From Klebsormidium nitens (taxonomy: Eukaryota; Plantae; Klebsormidiophyceae), in assembly GCA_000708835.1 (NCBI GenBank), contig DF237278.1, positions 37,894-101,893 of the forward strand: a stretch of DNA of 64,000 bases, read 5' to 3'. Positions 1 to 42,684 of this stretch are shown here, piece by piece. The notes under the pieces are model-generated. The model saw only the letters and a list, made by a program, of their open reading frames with translations, searched no databases and was not told the DNA's origin. The number at the start of each line of letters is the position of its first letter. The first letter of the stretch is position 1. Made by a program: the position numbers and the translations under genes.

Positions 1-223
1 AGCGCAGTCAAACACATTCGGCAAGAACCTGCTCATGGTGCGCAACATCGCCAAGGCCGTCAACGATCTCAACGCCATCAACGGACTGAACATCAACATT
101 CTGAACATCCGGACTCTTGGAAACTCCCTCATCCAAGCGCTCCAAACGTTCGCTTCCCAGTCAGTCGCAATCGGCGCAGACCTCACCAAGACGGCCAAGG
201 CCCTCAGCGGGTGCTCTGCTTGA
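1..223 (+). CDS. 3' end of an unknown protein-coding gene that starts before the window
   Basis: Frame +2 is open from base 2 to the TGA at 221-223 (AQSNTFGKNLLMVRNIAKAVNDLNAINGLNINILNIRTLGNSLIQALQTFASQSVAIGADLTKTAKALSGCSA*). Codons have a strong C/G-ending bias like the other exons. No family recognised. Confidence 0.7.
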   Translation, partial: AQSNTFGKNLLMVRNIAKAVNDLNAINGLNINILNIRTLGNSLIQALQTFASQSVAIGADLTKTAKALSGCSA

Positions 224-28500: not shown

Positions 28501-29892
28501 GAGAAAATGAGCGCAAGAATCTCAGAAAGTTGAGGCTTGGTAATGTCCTTGCAGTTTGCAATATTCACAGTGCTGACCTTACCAGATTCAGCAGCATACA
28601 GAGGCAATGAGAGAAAAGCTAGCACTTCCCCGAAGTAGGGAATTTTGGACAGACCAGATTGGAATGGCTTAGGAGTGAGCCGGCCAGAGAAAGTGGAAAT
28701 TAAAAGCTAAGCAAGCGCAGACCGGGGAGGTATCAAGGCTTCAAGTGGGAGCAAGCAGTGAAAGGAAAAAAAACAGGGTACGTTACAATCAGGGTAACTG
28801 GAAAAAGATGGACCAAGGAGCGGCTGAAACAAATCAGGTTCACCGACTTAGGGTTCCAGGACAAAAAGAAAGGCAAGGAAGTGGTAAAACAAAAGAGTCT
28901 GTATTGCAGCACATTCTGTTCGGAATTGCAGGGGTCGTCGCACCCCAGTCCCAGCCCTTCTGGTCTGACAAAATGTTCTTGGTACTTGTCCACAGAAGGT
29001 ATTCCCCAGTAGAATCGCGTTACAAACTCAGCTCACTAAGCTGCCTTTAGTTGGATCACTTCCAATGTCTTCTTAGTGTTCAAGCATGCCACTACATACT
29101 TAATTGACGGGTCCTTTTGGCACCCATCATAACCGACTTCTAGCGGAGAATAACAAAAGAAAGGAAGATCTCGGAAACAAGTATCGCTGCGCGGTAAGGT
29201 GACGTTCAGTGTGCAAGGAGACAAGAGCTTCTACACAATTTACCAGTTGCCAGCAGCAACTTCTTATGTTCCTTACCCTCAACAAGTTGCGTCCACCAAT
29301 ACCATACTGGAATTAACCCTGATAACAACAAAAGGCAAAGCCCACACAATTCAAAGTGACAACAAGAATTACCTGTCTCTAACAGCAACCTGGTATTGGC
29401 CAGCCTCTTCAACCCCACCATGGTATGGCCCACGTCGGGCCACACAAGGCCCTCGGCAGCTGCCGCCTCGTTAAATGGCACCCTCTCGAGCGGCACGTCG
29501 TCGGTCCCTCCGTAGGCGCCAAACACCGGCCTCCGGTAAACGATGCCCGTCAGTGTTGTGGCCAGCAGTGTCAGGTACCGGTCAATCATGTCCGCGCCAT
29601 CGGTCCCGGCGCCAGCTGGCAGTCCCGACTGCACGCCAGCTGGCAGGGCAGGGTTGGCCTGCAGGAGTTGCAGCACTTGGGAGACCTTTGCGTCGACGCC
29701 CGCGAGCGCTGAGCTGGAGTCTGCGGCGCCGAGGGAACTAGACTGGGCGGGGAGCAGCGGATTGTGACTGCCGGCCTGCGGGACGAGGACGGCGCCCACG
29801 AGTCGGAAGAGGACGATGAGCGTCAGCAGGCAGAAGCAGACGGTCAGGATCTTGGCGAGGCGACTGTTGGAGTCGCCCTTGAGAGACAACAT
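25594..29892 (-). CDS. TylF/MycF/NovP-family (macrocin-type) sugar O-methyltransferase with an N-terminal transmembrane anchor
   Basis: Exons 29892-29373, 28312-28206, 27687-27586, 26727-26446 and 25713-25594, GT-AG and phase-consistent. TM segment [23 protein letters not shown]. TylF motifs: [82 protein letters not shown]. Confidence 0.93.
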
Positions 29893-30706
29893 TGTGTTTC
29901 CGCGATGAGGAGGAACACTGAGCTGAACAGTGGTACGCGGCTCCTTGGCAGCTGGAGTGGGAGCTGGAGGAGGGCGGGGGGCGCGGGTTGCTGCCGAACG
30001 GCGATGTAAGAATCTGAGAGTAATCTTGGCAACGTGACTCTGTGCCAAGGAAGACTTTACTCGCAGATGCTTGAACCTTTGACAGGACTGAAATAGGGCA
30101 AATCTTCGAATGAGTGTGGCTTTCCGAGCCTCAATGTCAGCCGTCCCTGTAAGTCACTGTTAACCACGCTGCTTTGTGGCAGGCCACGCTTGGTGTTCTG
30201 CGCGCAGTTTTTTCAAACTTCGCACGGCGATTTTGTCAGAGCACGTTGGCGCTGTGTGCTCAAAAGCTGGATGTCCATCAAGTCTAGCTAGGTACTACCT
30301 ACTAGATTCAGTGGCCTGATTCCTGACATTCGGCTGGGGGTACGTTGGTGAGGAGTCGAAGTAGCTCGTACAAGTTCCTGAAGTGTTACTGGAGTGCACC
30401 GTGCAGGTGGGGTACGGCGCATCAAGACTTGTGTAATGAAGCAACCGCGCCGTCGGCGGAACATCGTCATGCCGGTCGCCTCTCAATATTCAAGCCATCA
30501 GTATGGAAGAAACCACTTTATTGCCGTCTTCTAAATCCGAAGACGGTAGACAAGAGTCGGTAAAGTCCATCCCCCCCCGGCCGAGGCCCGGGGATAGGTA
30601 TTAGCAGGAGGTACGGAGGCGTCGACTCAGGACTGCATCAAGCTTGTACGGAATTTTAACGAAGTACGGTAGTAAGTACCTCTACCCCTGAGAAACAAAT
30701 TTTATA

Positions 30707-32825: not shown

Positions 32826-35800
32826 ATGATGACCATCACAATCACATGGCCCACGGCCGTCTGGCCCACCATGCTCCTCCAGGGCTTCACATTCCGCCGG
32901 GGCGGGAACCTGCCCAAGAACAAAACCCCCCGCGGGCGCCTCACGTCCCTTGGGCTCTGCGTGCTGGCCCTTTCATTCTGGATTCTGATTCTTGTGGTCT
33001 TCAACAGCACTTTATCGCCCGCAATGTTTTCCCGCCCATTCGCATCAAAGTCGCTAAACAGCGGGCTGCGCGCGGACACGATAAACACGCTTGCGCCCGA
33101 TAGGAAGTGGACGAGAGAAGCATGTATAAGTCACTGGGCGTCAGGGATCGACCAGCTGGCCTTTGGGAAGCTGGCAACCAAGCGGGTGTTCCTGGGCATG
33201 AATTTGAAGAACAACGAGCTCGGTGAGTTGCCCATGCTCTTGTCACCTGGCTTCTGCTTGCTCATTGGATTGGAACGTGCTCCCCTCTCGAGTGGTGGTA
33301 AGAATGCTGGGGGTGGTGCCGAATGATACGTGGAATATCGGTTTCATGGCAGCTTAGGCAGAGAGTCTGCTCACATTCTGGGGTTCCACAAGTTTCCTTC
33401 CATCGCCTTGTGGCTGACATTGTGTAACAAGCAAGGATTGGACGGATTTCAGCTGCAGATTGGGTGCCCATTGGTGCGCTTGCCATGTTCTATAAAATAC
33501 ACAAGTCAGCGGTCTCGGTACTCTGGGTGCACACTTTGTTTGCTGGTACTTCAAGATGGCTGCTGGCGGAGAGCAGTGCAGTTGTCTACTCTCGGGCCCC
33601 CGCGACTAATATGAGGTATTCGTATTAGAATTAGTAATGAAGAAATGATGCAAGACCGATGCAAGGATCATGGGATCTGAAATTGCCAGCTGGCGCACCG
33701 GGACAGTGCCAGCTGGCGGGATGCGAGGCCACCATTTGTTTTGCGGGAATATTGGGTCTTTTGAGTTTCAGGAGAGCTCGTATATCGATTCCCGGATTCA
33801 CAGCTGAGACCTTTAATGCAAGCAGGTTTTGGAGGGTGTGGCGCAGAGAGTATTCTTCTGAATCCTGTTCCGACCAGGAAACAAACCACTCGAGAAACAG
33901 GCTGTGACTTCTGTTCATCATTGAACAAAGTGGCCTTGTATCTTTGCTACCATCGTTTCCTTTGAAAAACAGAAAACGAGTGAAAGGTTCGACCATTTCC
34001 GGTTGCTCCCTCTTCTCTCCTGCTTTTCTTCACATCTTTTTAGCTGATTGTGAGGGCCTGGTTTGAAGTGTACTCACCTGTTAGGGGCCCATGTTCTGGC
34101 AAAGAAACGGCACCTCAGCCAGTTCACCTTGTGTAAGTCAGGTGGCTGGCTGCGAGTACCATTTCAAGAATCACCAATCCTCCTGAAAGGATCTGCGTTC
34201 CTTCAGCAGTTTCATCTTGCAGAGCCACTTATTCTTGCGGGACTTCTTCGTCCAAATCTCAGCAGAAAAGCTACGAAAGCGAAGGAAGGCAGAAAGCGAT
34301 GGAGACTCCTCAAGGGATGCGCTCAGTCTCTGAGGAAAGAGGGAGATGCCGCCTTTGGGAGTTGGCTAAGCGCAGCACCAAAAAAGGGGAAGTGTTGTCA
34401 AAAATCTTCGAAAGAGTCTAGACAGGAAAGCTCGTCTCGCCTCCCGCTCTCTTGTCTCCAACCACCTTACGGGCAACGGATATTTGTTCCGATCCCATTC
34501 GGTCTCCCAACCTTCCTCTTGTCGCCTTATTCATTACTTGATACCGCTCTCTCTTTGTTTTCAGAGTGCGACCACTTCCTGGGCGAAATCCTTTTACTTG
34601 CCGAGTTTCTCGGGCCCCCTCGGATACACATCTCCATCTACGAGTCGGGCAGTCACGACGCCACCCCCGAAAAGCTGCAGGCTTTCGAGCGGGAACTGAA
34701 CGTGCTCCAAATTCCGAACACGATTATCACAAACGGCCTCACACGGAGACCAGGCCAGACTCGCATCGATTTCCTGGTCAATGCGCGCAACATGGCGCTT
34801 AACCCGCTTCTGAAGCAGGTTAGTCTTGGTACGGACTGCTCAAGATGCGGTCCGTCGCAAGTGGTCCAAAGCGATAAAAAGCAAAAAATGGATTAATATG
34901 TTGGTGGCGTTGAGTGCTTGATGCTAGAGCAGCTTCTTAAGCAGGCAGGAACATCTGGGGAGCGTTTAAGACGGGTTTGCAAAGCAGCTTCCAGATGATA
35001 GGAGACATGAGACCACTCGAGTTCTGTACTGGCCAAGACACGGTGTAATCCGCTCCTGTGAAACGCTAATGGTCCATAGCGCACAGGATCAGAGTTTGAG
35101 ATTCGGTGAAAAGCAATTTGCAGCCGTTGGAACTGGGTCGAATAAAACCTTTCTGTCAGCCGAATCCTCACTGCAAAAGCTACAGTTTCTGACACGCTAA
35201 GCACCAGAGTCTTTCTAAACATTCGCGCAGCTCGTTTGTTGGCACTTGCGCTCGCACTTGCACTGTTGGCACCTTTCTTCAACTTTGCTTTTGCGTCGTC
35301 CATCTCGAGGCAAAATACAAAACCAGGAACCTTGTTTCTGCCCACGCCAGAGTGCACAATAACAGCCCTGACAGCGTTGTTTAGCCACACCATCAGTGCA
35401 TCTCCGACCGCTGAATGGCGCTTACCCGTTCGCTCGCGGATTCCGCAGGTCTGGGAAGGACCCCACGGAAACTTCGAGAACGGAACGTACGCCGCAGGCA
35501 ACGGGTGCTGCGACCCGCTGACGTCAATCGAGGTGTATGCCACGTCAGACAAGATCTACGGCCTGCGGCTCAGCTTTGGGGGGGTGACGAAGGGCCGCAT
35601 GGGGAGCCCCATCGGTGAAAGGTAAGGACTTGCGCCGACATCTGACGCTTACTCATTCTTTCGTTCTTTCTGAGAGTCGTAGCTCGAGTCGTATCGCTTG
35701 TGATCTTCTTCTGCTAATCTAGTCATTTCAAAGGGACCGTTGTGGAGGGCTGGCATAGGACATAGGGGCATAAGGGCGGGACTGTTTGGTTTTACGTATA

Positions 35801-38800
35801 TGCAGTGGACTTCTTAACCTGGTCGGCATCTGGGCATCAAGATGCATATTGTTGGACAGGAACGTCTGCTTTGATCTGATCGCTGCGATCACACTGATCC
35901 ATCTATGAACCTCGTCTGCAGACCCCGCGCAAAGCTTTTCAAGATCCATGCCGTTTCCCCGAATCTTTATGCCCTCTGTTTCATCCGCTTTTTGGGGGAG
36001 CGGAGGGGCACACTCCCCAAAGGTCTGGAAAGCTTTCGGAACAGTCTTCTCTCTGCAATCTGCTTAATGTTCGTGCGGACTCCTGCTCAGGCACGTGCTC
36101 GATCTCCGGGGAGGCGAGTACGTCGCCCATTGCGAATACAAAGAGTGCCGCCCAAAGCCTTTGGATTGACCATTCTGTATGAAGAATGGTTTTAGGGTTC
36201 GACCAGAGGAAGCCATTCAAACCGAGAAGAGTTTTTGTTTGCAAACTCCTGCGCTTCACAAACGGAAAAGTGGTCGTGCGCAATCCTCCTCAGGCACGTG
36301 CTCGATCTCCGGAGAGGCGAGTACGTTATCTTGGTGGAAGGCGCCGGGGAGGGTCATCTGGTTAAAGTAAAGATGACGACCAACTGGGGGGGGGTGCTCC
36401 TCGCGGGGGATCCCTCGGCCGAGGGCTGGCAAAGCACGGGGAACAAACTGGACGACATTTCGGGCTTCTACTCCGAGGACGCAATTCATGCGCTCAGCTT
36501 CGCATGGGCGGACATGGCTCCGGTGGGTTACGCTAACCCTCTGTAACTCCGGTTAGCGTCTGATGGTTCTTTTGCCTTGGTGCTGACTTTGAAGGTGCTT
36601 GAAACTAGAGCCGAAAACCGGTGCTTTGCAGGACGCAACCCGCTGGATCAACCGCGTACTGCTTCTGAAGGATGTCTTTTGGGGCGCCACGCTCATTCCC
36701 ATGCTTGTTTGAAGAGGCGTCGCGCAGCCATCCGGCTTCCCGATTAAAACATGCACAAATGGTTCGACTGGATTGTCAGAGTCCTCGAATCTGGAGTCGG
36801 TGTCTGCAGGACGTCAGTCGCTGGTTCAACCGCGTACTGCTTCTAAAGGATGGCTTTTGGGCACGAGATTCATTTCAACGCAAGAGGCGTTTGGGCGGCC
36901 ACTCCTTCGCTTCCCAATTTGAACACACAGAAAGCGATCAATATCAGACTTCCAACGTGCTCTATTTTGGAATCGGTGTCTGCAGGAGGCCAGCCGCTGG
37001 TTCGACCACGTACTGCTTCTAACCGACGGCTACCTGTGCGCCGAGGACATTCTAGTGCTTTTCTGCAAGAGGTGTTGCAGGGGAATCATTTTCGTTGTTA
37101 AGCAGTATTGCAGAGGCGAATTGATGCTAATTCTTGAAGGTCCTAACATTCTAGAGTTGGTGCTTTGCAGGAGGCCAGCCGCCGGTTCGACGGCGTGCTG
37201 CTTCTTAAGGACGGTTACCTGTGTGCAGAGGACATTTCCACGCTTTCTCGCAAAAGGCGTTGCGTAGAGATCCCGTTTGTTCCTAAGCAAACATGCAGAA
37301 GCAGATTGGTGCCAACTCCCGAAGGTCCTCACATATTGGAATCGGTGCTTTGCAGGACGCCAGCCGCCGGTTCGCCGCGTACTGCTTCTAAACGACGGCT
37401 ACCTGTGGCGCGAAGTTCGGCCTTATGCTTTCATGGACGAGGAGCCGCCAATCCTTCGGTTAACAATCCAAACACGCAGAATTAAGAGTTATGCCTGACA
37501 AGTTTCCAAGGTGCTCAATTTTAGAATCGGTGCTTTGCAGGACGCCAGCCGCCGGTTCGATCGCGTGCTGATTCTAAACGACGGCTACCTGTGCGCGGAG
37601 GACATTCTCATGCTTCTGATGCACGACGCGACCATGGCGACTGCGATCGACACGATCGGGATCCCCGAGGGAGAGCACACGCGGTCGTTCATGGTGTATG
37701 ACACGTGGGTGGGGCGGGACATCGACGGTCAGGAGCAGGAGCGCAAGTTCCCCATCAGCAACATCCTGACGGTTCAAGAATGGTAAGAGATTCGAAAGAG
37801 TCTGCCTGGACGTCTGCCTTGTTTGGTACTGTGGCTCGTTGGCTAAGTCAGTCGGAATCGGTTCAAAAGTGCTTTGTAGTTCAGAACTACCGTTCAAGAT
37901 CCCGTAAGCGTTCGATAGCAAAAGGATGCATATATGCAATGGCGTTCAAACCTTCTCACTCCTAAACTTTTGGATTGTAAAGAGTCCAGACTCGTAATCT
38001 GAACGATTGATCAGGACCCCCCTTCGTCACCTTATGGACGGCAAGACAGTCTCGGTGTCGTGCGCTTGCCACGGCGCTGTAAACATCACGTCCGACGTTT
38101 GAGCTCCCTGTCGCACCGTGCGCATCTTGTTTCTCACTTCAGTTTCTCTCAGACCTGAATGTCTGGACTCATCTTTTCTTGCCATATGCATCCCGTTTCT
38201 CACCTCAGCGCTTTGAAGGAATCCAACCCGTCCATATCGCTTTGTCCCGTCCGAAGCTCAGGTTCATGGACGGGATGCCTGTCTCGATCTTGTGCCTTTG
38301 GCAAGGCGCGGCCGACCTGGACTCGGATCTCTGAAGCTCCGTCCTCACCGTATGCATTCCGCTCTGAAAACCACGTAATTCTCAATCAGATTGAAAGCTG
38401 AGTCGCTCGATTGACTCCGTTCCTTATTGCAGGTTCATCGACGGGAAACCAACCCCGGTGTCGAGCCAACTCCGCCGTACGCATTCCGTTTCGGAACCCA
38501 GTCTCCTTCAATCGGAAGTCAATTACTAGAAGATCCCTTCCTTATTGCAGGTTCATGGACGGGAAGCCAATCCGGGTCTCGTGCGCTTGACAAGGCGCAA
38601 TGAATCCTATCTCTAAAGCCTACCGTATCCGTTCCGTTTCGGAGTCCAGAGTTGAACCCCGACTGAAACCCTAAATCGCTTACTCCTCGTTTTCCTCATC
38701 GCAGGTTCATGGACGGGAAGCCGATCCCGGTCTCGTGCGCGTGCCACGGCACCAGTTATCATATAACCACGTTGTAACCAGCCCATAATCATCCCCGGTT

Positions 38801-41800
38801 AGCAGCCAAAAACATCTTCTGTGCTTATTGCAGGTTCCTGGACGGGAAGCCCATCCCGGTGTCGTGCGCATGCCACGGGGCAGTCAACATCGACGCGGAC
38901 GTCTTCTACAAGAAGCGCATCACGTTCCGCAACCGCGGGTGGGAGGGCGAGTGCGCGGCCTCCGAGTACAGCTTCTTCTGCAAGGACATCTGGAACGCGT
39001 ACGGCGAGCGGGTGCGGATCGTGATGGACCCGCGCGTCGTCGTCGGGATCGACGTCAGCGCGTGGGAGCACGTGACGCTCGCACGTGCGAAGCAGCTGCC
39101 CGCGTACTTCAAGGAGGACCCGTTCGACACCGGGATCCAGCCGAGCCCCTGGAAGCCGCCACCTGTCATCGATCGACGGCTGGTGGAGAACACGCTTGCC
39201 CACCTGCCGTTCCCGTACCCGGTCCCGAAGCACATGATGTGCGTGCCGATCCACCACGACAGCGTGCGGGAGGCCGCGCTGATCGGGAAGTACGAGGAGG
39301 CGATCGAGGGGCTGCCCGCGTACCCGCGGGGGCCGTGGAAGCGGAACGAGAGCTGCCACGTGGGCTCCAGTGAGCGCGCTCGCCGGCTCCTTACTCGTTC
39401 TATTTTTGCTGTATTCTCCGCTTCGCCGTTCTGGTGGATTTCTAAAAGCTCGGTTGGGGACGCTTTGAGGATTCAAGTGAGTGCGCTTTCCCTCCATTCC
39501 GCTTTGCGTTGGTTGACCCTCTTGCCGCTCCGGTAGGGCCCCCAAAGCGATGTTGGAGCTGCGTGGACTCGCCTGAGTTATGCCCATTCGCTATTTCATT
39601 CCCTGCCACTGTTTCCTTCCTGCCGTACTCGTGGGGCGATGGAGGGAAGCGAGAGCTTCCACCCGACTGCAAGGGAATGCCCTTTTTGAGTTGGCGTTTC
39701 GACCAGTTTCGCGCTTCTCATCATGCTGAAGCCTTGAAATCGATGCTAGAGGAGCTAGGCAGGCTCGCGCGCTCGTTTGACGTGCTTCTCTAGTATTTTG
39801 CTTCCCCCTTGTACATTCTCGTTCAAGAACGCCTGCAGTCGGTTTGAACGCACAAGACCGGAAATGACTCACTTCGCTTTCAAGCGTATCCAAATCTTTC
39901 TCGTGAGCAGCAGACTTGAGTAGGCTGTTATCCGCAACTCATGGAGAAGCGTTTCTTGGGTTCGCTCGCCAGAAGGGCCCTCAACAAACGTCGTGTCCGT
40001 TCACTAGTCTACCAACGCAGCAGGTTTGGACTGGAGGGAGAGGCGACCTCGGTAGAATAGCACATCCTACAGAAGCGTTTGAATAATCTATCCAGTACTA
40101 ACGGGGTTGTCGAGTGTTGCCATTTGTGTTTTGGAAGAAAGACGCTTCGTCAACACGCAGAAAATATACACCGCAAAGCGAGACTCTCTTTCTGAACAGC
40201 GCACTGCCGCTGACGAATTGCGGACGGCTGCTGAAGCGCGCAGTGGTTGTCGTGCAGATGCTTACGTCAGCCGTTACACCGAGCCGGGGAGCAGTCTTTT
40301 CTACTACAACAGCGCAGGTGGGTCGCCCTTCTTCTGTCTGGCTCTGGAGGTGGCCCCCACACGTCCAACTTTATAGTGGCACTTTGGTTGTCTCAGAAAG
40401 ATTCGTCGCTCCCTGACCGTGCACTGTCATCTAGGAATTGGACTGCCTCAGGGTGGCGCTACGTCACAACCAAAACTTCGATCTTGAGTCTCAATAAGTC
40501 GCTTTTGATGATGTGGCTGGACGTAAGTTTTACGAGACACTGCCAATCAAAGTAAAGAGCGATTTTTTCCATTGATTTTGCGCCTGTACCGTCGTTTGTT
40601 GAAACGTAGGGTAATTCCGAAAGCATCTCTGAGCACAGGGAAGATCCCAAGTGAAGACTGGCGGCGAAGCTCCAAGATGAGTCCAACGAGGAAGTATTTC
40701 AGGCGCTCTGTCTGTACAACAATGACACCAAGGATTTTCTCATACTCCGTCGAGGGCACCAAGCAAAGCCCACCCGCTTTTATCAGTGAAATAACGCGTC
40801 CTTGTTTTCACGACCCCGAAACTCCACAACCGTTATCTGGCGCTCTCTTATTTTGGCAATTCGAAACTCCACACCCCTTGCCTGGTGCCATTGGATCTCC
40901 TCAAGCCCCTCAACCTCCCTAGGTCGCTACAAACCCGCAACGCTGGAATACAAACCCTTAAATGATATCTCTACCTGGCAAACCAAACCTCAAACTCGTT
41001 AATGCAGGCGCTGCCAAGATCTCCCCGAAGCGCCTCATCATCAGCGGCAGTGAGCGACTCGTATCGCCCAACTTCCAATTTATGTTCCTCATGCAACGCG
41101 ACGGCCAGTGCATCGTTTACCGGTTGAAAGAGCCGTTCCTACCGGTCTGGCGCTGGCCCTGGTGCGACCACCCGGGGATAGCTTACGTCGAGTTCCAGGG
41201 CGACGGGAACCTGGTCGCGTATGATACGAGCCCGCAGGCTATCATCGCGTCCTCCACGACCGCGGGCGAGCGGCGCGCAAAGCACCTCGCGCTGCTGGAC
41301 GACGGCCGGCTCGTGCTGACGTCAGCGACTGGTGACGTCGTGTGGGAGGCGGAGCAGACGTTCCTGGCGGAGTCGGCGGGTGAGCGGCTTCGTTTGCTCC
41401 GTTTGGACGTCCGACTCGGCTTATATAAACTCCCCTCTGTAGGACGTCCTTTTAGCGGATCGGCGCGTTTGCTTCCGTTTGGACGTCCGCTCCTCTTTCC
41501 TTTTCTTTGACCTTTCGGGTGGGCTCATCAGCCTTAGTTCCGACACAATTCCGTTCCCACAAGCAATCTTTTCCTCGGTCTGTGCATTCCTTCTCCTTCT
41601 AGACGCCCTTTTGCTCCGTTCCCACGTCACGTCGTCATAATGGCGTCCCTTCGCTGGATTTCGCTGTCCATGTACTCGTCCCGCCTTCCTAGTTTCTCTT
41701 GCCTTTGTCACTCATTCTTCGCTGCCTGCTTTCGTGTGGCTCTAGTCGGGCGTCTGTATGCTTACGTCACTCGTCCTTCTGCTGCATTGGCCGCACATCC

Positions 41801-42684
41801 TCGCCCCCCCGCTTTTTGTTGTTTTGGTCATCGATTAGGCGCCCAATTTGCAGATACCCTCGAATCCGTTTGCTTTAGTCAGCCTTTGGACCTGTTAATA
41901 GCTGCGTCGGGCGTCTGGTCCTAGCCGCGCTTGACCACTCAATCTTGTCTCTGCAGCTTGCTTAACACTAGTCTGTAAGGGAGGTTGCACTTTACTTGCG
42001 AAGCTGAATAATACATGCATATTCTTTCTGAAGGGGATGAAGCCTCTTGTCAACGTGTGTGGTCTGACCACAATCTGCGTAATCTCTTGGATCAGTCAGG
42101 CTTTCAGAACTCAGCATTATTAAAAAAAACGTCTGAAACCCAAGTCAAAGTCGGCATGTAATCGTAGCCCACTCCCAGGCTTTCCCGTCGCCTGATTGAC
42201 TGCGCTTCTCTTTACAGCTTGGTTCACAAAGCGATCCGGCTACCAGATATTCGTTCCCATCACGCTGACCGGCATCGACGCCGAGTTCGAGGGCGCGACG
42301 GCGGTCGGCGAACTGTGCCAGGCCCTCTCGGGCCGCGTTTTCTTCTCCCTAGTTTTCCTCGGCGTAGGCGAAATGCCGGCTATCGAAGCCGCCCTCCACG
42401 GGATCCTCCTAGAATACATGTGCTCGTTTACGAGTAGCGGCGTCGCGTCGTCCGGGGACCAAGCGCGCGAGTTGCACGTGGCCACGTACAAAGAGTGGAG
42501 CACGGGGCGCGCGCACAGCTGTGCGAAGGCGTTCCCGGTACACGATAGTGACACGTGTCTCAGGGACTTCATCGGGGACATCACGAGTAACTTGCATTCG
42601 GCGGAGCGGTGCACGGCCGGCGATGCGCAGGGCGCGACCTTCTTGGAGCCCTCGGCGGTGTGTTGTGACTCGCCGACTTACTAA
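32826..42684 (+). CDS. CAP59/cryptococcal mannosyltransferase-1 (GT69, PF11735)-like glycosyltransferase with a jacalin-like insertion, a bulb-type lectin and an unknown C-terminal domain
   Basis: Exons 32826-33222, 34565-34818, 35449-35621, 36294-36522, 37541-37782, 38834-39369, 40258-40317 (tentative), 41008-41379 and 42218-42684; all phases join. TM segment LGLCVLALSFWILILVVF. GT69 motifs: KRVFLGMNLKNNE, IHISIYESGSHDAT, RIDFLVNARNMALNPL, FDRVLILNDGYLCAEDI, VYDTWVGRDIDG, ECAASEYSFFCKDIW. Linking the two lectin/C-terminal exons to this gene rests on phase compatibility and the absence of a separate start. Confidence 0.85.
35449..36522 (+). other. Jacalin-like (beta-prism I) lectin domain encoded by exons 3-4 of the GT69-like gene
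   Basis: VWEGPHGNFENG..LTSIEVYATSDKIYGLRLSFGG..RMGSPIG|RHVLDLRRGEYVILVEG..LVKVKMTTNWG..LDDISGFYSEDAIHALSFAW follows the jacalin pattern (W-G-x-G, ITSIEV, L..GEY...VEG, L.F.TN, L.GF.G...I.AL.F.W). Confidence 0.65.
41008..41379 (+). other. Bulb-type (GNA/B-lectin) mannose-binding lectin domain
   Basis: LVSPNFQFMFLMQRDGQCIVY..VW..VEFQGDGNLVAYD..HLALLDDGRLVL..VVW: three degenerate QxDxNxVxY subdomains. Confidence 0.8.

Follow-up and report, generated by a model that had tools for sequence, protein, structure and literature searches.

Exon organization and the interrupted GT69 domain

The 64,000-nucleotide stretch of Klebsormidium nitens DNA analysed here (contig DF237278.1 of assembly GCA_000708835.1, forward strand, positions 37,894 to 101,893; hereafter the window, in whose own numbering positions are given) contains a nine-exon gene on the plus strand for a type II membrane-anchored glycosyltransferase of the Cap59/Cmt1 type (family GT69). 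Nested inside the catalytic domain of this enzyme is a complete domain of about 134 residues with a predicted jacalin/ZG16-type beta-prism I fold. Cmt1 of Cryptococcus is an alpha-1,3-mannosyltransferase, and both Cmt1 and Cap59 are members of GT69 (PF11735).

Each exon was translated separately, and every exon border in the gene is formed by ag at the acceptor and gt at the donor. Exon 1 (32826..33222) comprises the ATG, a basic N-terminal cytosolic stub, the signal anchor LGLCVLALSFWILILVVF, a stem and the first GT69 strand, RVFLGMNLKNNEL, and ends in a phase-1 donor (gtgagt). As read from the translation, the anchor region is a basic stretch followed by an 18-residue hydrophobic segment, which fits a type II topology and is typical of Golgi type II transferases. 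The catalytic domain is recognised by the Pfam model CAP59_mtransfer (PF11735, gathering score 28.8 bits) on three exons, and the likeness to Cmt1 and Cap59 covers profile positions 17-242. Exon 2 (34565..34818), which ends in ..RNMALNPLLKQ with a phase-0 donor, scores 62.3 bits (E 7e-17) over positions 17-108. The domain resumes on exon 5 (37541..37782; DASRRFDRVLILNDGYLCAEDIL..) with 42 bits (E 1e-10) over positions 114-177, and its C-terminal part is found on exon 6 (38834..39369), together with a conserved extension, with 23.5 bits over positions 191-242.

The two exons that separate exon 2 from exon 5 have a combined length of 402 nucleotides or 134 codons. Exon 3 (35449..35621; phase-0 acceptor, phase-2 donor) encodes the N-terminal half of the beta-prism module (VWEGPHGNF..GSPIGE) and exon 4 (36294..36522; phase-0 donor) the C-terminal half (RHVLDL..SGFYSEDAIHALSFAWADMAP). 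Accordingly, the match to CAP59_mtransfer breaks off at profile position 108 and restarts at 114, and about 138 residues stand for about five positions of the profile. The original prediction, which was made from the DNA sequence of the window, had placed a jacalin-like domain between two GT69 motifs that it took to be joined by a short loop, and the family model does indeed have only these five or so positions there.

All borders of the module fall between codons: exon 2 ends on a whole codon (..NMALNPLLKQ, then gt), exon 3 begins on one (ag, then VWEGP..), exon 4 ends on one (..FAWADMAP, then gt) and exon 5 begins on one (ag, then DASRRFDRVLILND..). The two introns bounding the module (34818/35449 and 36522/37541) are therefore both of phase 0, and the intron within the module (35622-36293) is of phase 2 (GE/R). 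The four predicted exon borders proved exact, with canonical ag and gt sites in the predicted phases, and the description as a symmetric 0-0 cassette also held, with phase-0 bounding introns in each of the nine loci examined (the window and eight related loci described below). A symmetric 0-0 cassette is a classic signature of exon shuffling, and the gene is a clear natural example of a domain that was inserted as a symmetric phase-0 exon and then maintained by selection across a small gene family.

The helix that ends in ..RNMALNPLLKQ and the strand ..RVLILND flank the insertion point. The order of elements on exons 1, 2 and 5 reads strand RVFLGMNL, helix, strand IHISIYESGS, helix, strand NTIITNG, helix RIDFLVNARNMALNPLLKQ, insert, strand RVLILND. 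This would correspond to the standard N-terminal half of a GT-A fold, with the insert in the loop entering the strand with the DxD-like end. PDB sequence searches with the GT69 exons gave nothing usable and no GT69 structure, so that we infer the position of the insertion within the fold from this order of elements only.

Relatives, fold and evolutionary constraint of the module

An exhaustive HMMER search with exon 4 against 1.84 billion representatives returned three true clusters and one false positive (P0004), which was rejected as a bacterial repeat protein with a secretion tail. A profile search brought additional members, and the contigs of these relatives gave eight loci (L001-L008). 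A pattern scan of a metagenome collection with a second alignment matched 254 patterns and confirmed no relative. The module is located between CAP59 exons in nine out of nine loci, with the order of exons as in the window, and in all nine it starts with cag followed by (G/A)T(T/C)TGGGA and its last codon is complete ahead of gt. By this sequence comparison the nested module is not a one-off and belongs to a small gene family with four groups (A-D). Group A comprises the window, L007 and L002, which share two module exons and the same phase-2 intron; identities to exons 3 and 4 of the window are 89% and 91% for L007 and 74% and 62% for L002. The remaining groups carry the module on one exon, with identities to the corresponding parts of 61% and 51-54% in group B (L004, L005), 56-58% and 48-49% in group C (L001, L003) and 63-65% and 54-55% in group D (L006, L008). 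The intron inside the module is thus confined to group A, in relationships that are unrooted. Since the phase-0 bounding introns are found at identical positions in the nine loci, the comparison shows a single insertion of the module, before the family diversified into the four groups.

The single-exon modules of the relatives allowed the fold to be assigned. Against the Pfam Jacalin model (PF01419), which has a gathering score of 22 bits, L004 scored 38 bits, L005 37 bits, L006 28 bits (profile positions 2-133 of 136) and P0003 25.4 bits, and two further single-exon relatives fell just below the cut-off with 20.5 and 21.8 bits. Exons 3 and 4 of the window align to these Jacalin modules without gaps. 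A family profile including the two halves from the window found ZG16p (E 1e-10) and WGA16 (E 5e-8) in the PDB. An AlphaFold model of the L006 module, built from an alignment of 12 rows, had 11 strands, a pLDDT of 79.9 and a pTM of 0.76. Foldseek matched this model to WGA16, ZG16b and ZG16p with TM scores of 0.80-0.82, and VIA-align gave Z scores of 18.7 for WGA16, about 17.5 for ZG16p, 16.7 for Heltuba, 16.5 for banana lectin and 15.4 for jacalin (1jac), covering 118-127 of 134 residues at about 2 A. The relative L006 therefore models as a beta-prism I, which is the fold that the original prediction had named as decisive for the module.

Some points count against this assignment. The model represents a relative, with identities of 63% and 54% to exons 3 and 4 of the window, and the confident model was one of five in the second modelling round, in which the 12-row alignment was used. 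A first model (P0003, 7 alignment rows) was poor, with a pLDDT of 52.5, although its Foldseek matches were already all of the jacalin type. Finally, a Pfam scan of exons 3 and 4 taken separately gave no match to Jacalin or any other family at E<=1; half domains are too short for such a match, and we therefore do not regard this result as evidence against the fold.

The failure of either half to match Jacalin, together with the fact that no full-length spliced protein with the module was found among the representatives searched, might suggest that the module exons are non-coding, being either chance open reading frames or a decayed insertion in a long intron of an ordinary GT69 gene. We consider this highly improbable in view of the selection acting on these exons and of the homologs that exceed the Jacalin cut-off. 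Between the window and L007, at an unsaturated dS of 0.59-0.75, the ratio of nonsynonymous to synonymous substitution rates (dN/dS) was 0.081 for exon 3 and 0.068 for exon 4, next to 0.186 for exon 1 and 0.040 for exon 2. Against L002 the values were 0.07 for exon 3, 0.15 for exon 4 and about 0.08 for the catalytic exons 2, 5 and 6, at a dS that is saturated. For the module in L004 versus L005 and in L001 versus L003 dN/dS was about 0.22. The amino acid identities of the other GT69 exons are 81% (exon 1) and 96% (exon 2) to L007, and 47% (exon 1), 81% (exon 5) and 82% (exon 6) to L002. In comparisons with the orthologous loci L002 and L007 the exons are conserved islands in intron sequence most of which cannot be aligned, and the nucleotide alignment to L007 starts and stops within 9 nucleotides of the exon borders. 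Splice sites and phases are conserved across the three orthologs. Chance is excluded because the same exons with the same borders are conserved against both loci while the introns are mostly unalignable. As far as the comparative data reach, the non-coding reading is refuted, and the pattern of substitutions indicates a translated module on which purifying selection acts with almost the strength seen for the catalytic exon.

A translated and constrained module also bears on whether its exons are optional. It was proposed in the original prediction that both exons might be skipped to give a plain GT69 isoform, and the cell could use this form next to the lectin-bearing one in which both are included. 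Skipping both exons would keep the frame, as the bounding introns are of phase 0, and the Pfam GT69 model needs only the few positions mentioned above at the insertion point. However, purifying selection on the module nearly equals that on the catalytic exon and the module is retained in all four gene groups, so that we judge a regulated cassette to have a low probability. A cassette that is mostly skipped appears unlikely on the same comparative grounds, and a minor skipped isoform would be compatible with the constraint data.

The altered sugar-binding site and possible roles of the module

The closest relatives of the module by sequence and fold are ZG16p, ZG16B and WGA16 (PDB 3apa, 3aqg and 3woc; Z 17.4-18.7, TM about 0.8). 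These are free secreted single-domain lectins, whereas the algal module is nested in the catalytic domain of an enzyme. The mannose site of ZG16p is composed of Gly35 in the GG loop, Gly147-Ser148-Leu149 in the binding loop and Asp151 on the last strand; the latter belongs to a GXXXD motif and binds O4 and O6 of mannose (PMC4059138). In the structural alignments (model 12..134 with chain 35..162, and 1..131 with 27..159) Gly12 of the module is opposite Gly35 and His123 opposite Asp151. The GG-loop column is Gly in all members covering the N-terminal half, including the window (ENGTY), and this residue is therefore common to ZG16p and the module. The position of the GXXXD aspartate, in contrast, is occupied by Arg in the two group B loci, L004 and L005, and by His in the window and in L001, L002, L003, L006, L007 and L008, which make up groups A, C and D. 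No member has an acidic residue in its last strand (AIHALSFAW). By these alignments the canonical mannose site carries a conserved alteration. The aligned segment of WGA16, which is among the closest solved fold relatives, likewise lacks the aspartate.

A vicinal Cys-Cys pair (GCC[DE]PL; GNGCCDP at 35500-35515 of the window) is invariant in all copies of the module. It is specific to the algal module, as neither ZG16p nor WGA16 has it in the alignments, and in this subfamily it may form a vicinal disulfide or serve a metal- or redox-related function.

We somewhat favour the interpretation that the module is a constitutive accessory domain for glycan tethering with a non-canonical site. It would then be no optional cassette, and most likely the module and a bulb-type lectin domain near the C-terminus of the same protein (see below) would together keep the luminal enzyme bound to a glycan polymer or to an acceptor that already carries glycans. 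Binding would occur through a non-canonical site, given that a conserved His, or in one group Arg, stands in place of the GXXXD aspartate. This would be analogous to the ricin-type lectin domain of GalNAc-transferases, which directs follow-up glycosylation.

Several observations speak against this interpretation or narrow it. The GXXXD motif is not kept in the module, reading EDAIH in the window, GDA(V/I)H in L002 and L006 and EDGIR in L004 and L005, and the first Gly of the motif, present in L002 and L006, is replaced by Glu in the window copy. With the canonical aspartate gone, and in the window copy also the Gly of the motif, carbohydrate binding by the predicted beta-prism module is a guess. 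Inclusion of the module in transcripts is predicted from evolutionary constraint. In the generic GT-A fold, moreover, loops that run from a helix into a strand are found at the sheet edge lying opposite to the nucleotide-sugar site, and by this analogy the insertion loop probably points in the direction opposite to the active site. If so, the beta-prism would extend away from the catalytic centre, which agrees better with tethering or reading than with a lid that binds the acceptor directly. The term acceptor-binding lectin in the original prediction thus went further than the evidence, both with regard to the replaced residues and to the probable face of the insertion loop.

It is possible, but in our view less probable than tethering, that the beta-prism is included constitutively and has lost its lectin activity. 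It would then have a structural role, mediate oligomerisation or protein-protein interactions, or act as a spacer holding the C-terminal lectin in position. Such a loss would be in line with the His or Arg at the aspartate position, with a last strand free of acidic residues and a motif Gly replaced by Glu in the window, and with the missing aspartate in WGA16. The low model confidence of the conserved N-terminal stretch VW.GP.GN in the isolated module would also be compatible with an interface to the GT69 domain. On the other hand, the GG-loop Gly, which in ZG16p (Gly35) contacts mannose, is conserved in the module, the His or Arg at the aspartate position is itself conserved and suggests a maintained altered site, not decay, and a second lectin-type domain in the protein fits a role in glycan handling.

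With regard to known enzymes, appended lectin domains are an established feature of some glycosyltransferases and are important for their mechanism. GalNAc-transferases (GT27) are Golgi type II enzymes of the GT-A fold, in which a C-terminal ricin-B lectin reads existing glycans and steers further glycosylation. The gene in the window is a variant on this known theme of glycosyltransferase plus lectin domain, with the difference that in GT27 a beta-trefoil lectin is linked after the catalytic domain, while the algal enzyme has a beta-prism within its catalytic domain and carries a second lectin as an appendage. Compared with the GT69 profile, the algal protein has, besides the roughly 138 residues in place of about five positions, a bulb lectin and a further C-terminal domain.

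Our literature search found no paper on GT69 or CAP59 together with jacalin in the relevant sense, nor on GT69 together with Klebsormidium, and no paper found describes this layout, in agreement with the original prediction, in which the architecture was not recognised among described GT69 proteins. Van Holle & Van Damme 2019 (PMC6362431) listed three 'mannosyltransferase 1 (CMT1)/GNA' chimerolectin genes for Klebsormidium nitens, and these have the same combination of enzyme and C-terminal bulb lectin as the gene in the window. In Table 2 of the same survey K. nitens has no jacalin domain, and a jacalin 'loss' was scored on that branch, so that the nested beta-prism went unnoticed there. The present finding would correct the survey, in which jacalin is scored as absent or lost in Klebsormidium.

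A bolder version would be that this is the first known glycosyltransferase with a lectin fold nested in its GT-A domain, in which the conserved His or Arg shifted the specificity of the beta-prism to a ligand other than mannose, possibly an anionic glycan, and which as a reader-writer enzyme reads its own polymer product or acceptor. We regard this as rather unlikely in its entirety. If true, such an enzyme would take part in making the cell wall or mucilage in a streptophyte lineage that diverged early. The family in any case offers a tractable case for how nested binding modules may shape polysaccharide synthesis in streptophyte algae.

C-terminal exons, intron repeats and neighbouring genes

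Downstream of exon 6 the gene continues on the plus strand with a micro-exon of 60 nucleotides (40258..40317; ..AYVSRYTEPGSSLFYYNSA..), which is of phase 1 on both sides and fits exons 6 and 7. Its ag and gt borders are kept in L002 (12772-12831). Located between the last GT69 exon and the bulb-lectin exon, it is easily overlooked by gene models. Exon 7 (41008..41379; 70% amino acid identity to L002) encodes a putative bulb-type (GNA-like) lectin domain. It matched Pfam B_lectin (PF01453) with 25.1 bits (E 2.6e-5), below the cut-off of 32.4 bits, and contains three QxDxNxVxY motifs, of which one is canonical (FQGDGNLVAY), one near-canonical (MQRDGQCIVY) and one degenerate. Exon 8 (42218..42684) encodes a C-terminal domain of about 155 residues with several Cys, followed by the stop codon. 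This domain had no Pfam match and no Atlas match, and is conserved in relatives with 63% amino acid identity in L002 and 46-48% in L004 and L005.

A repeat search revealed that several introns of the gene contain echoes of the splice site that follows them, all on the plus strand. Each echo consists of a copy of the 3' splice site and the first 30-100 nucleotides of the next exon, and the last copy alone runs on into the exon. The echo at 36068..36123, in the intron within the module, is a 91% copy of the 3' splice site and the first 33 nucleotides of exon 4 and runs into a stop if used as an acceptor. At 36603..37540 there are five degenerate tandem echoes, with a period of 176-185, of the 3' splice site and start of exon 5; the intron before exon 5 consists largely of these echoes, and the sixth copy of the array is the real splice site. 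Five further degenerate copies, of the 3' splice site and start of exon 6, are found at 38017..38833, and L002 has similar echoes ahead of the exon orthologous to exon 6. We rejected the upstream echoes as real acceptors, since the exon 4 echo hits a stop and the orthologs conserve the downstream copies only. Echoes also occur at other exon borders in loci that stem from other samples, namely in L002 (10655-10950, 13609-13683 and 9013-9047) and in L008 (7403-7486, 7888-7971 and 10544-10874), those in L008 including copies of an exon end. The intron echoes look like a genome-wide property of these algae.

In both members of group B a Glyco_transf_61 gene is encoded divergently upstream on the minus strand (L004, 2133-3710; L005, 1643-3274). 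This conserved synteny may point to a small neighbourhood of genes for glycosylation. In the window, an open reading frame of 280 amino acids lies on the minus strand directly upstream of the GT69 gene (29206-30048); it contains a hydrophobic anchor and an exon-like C-terminal part that looks conserved.

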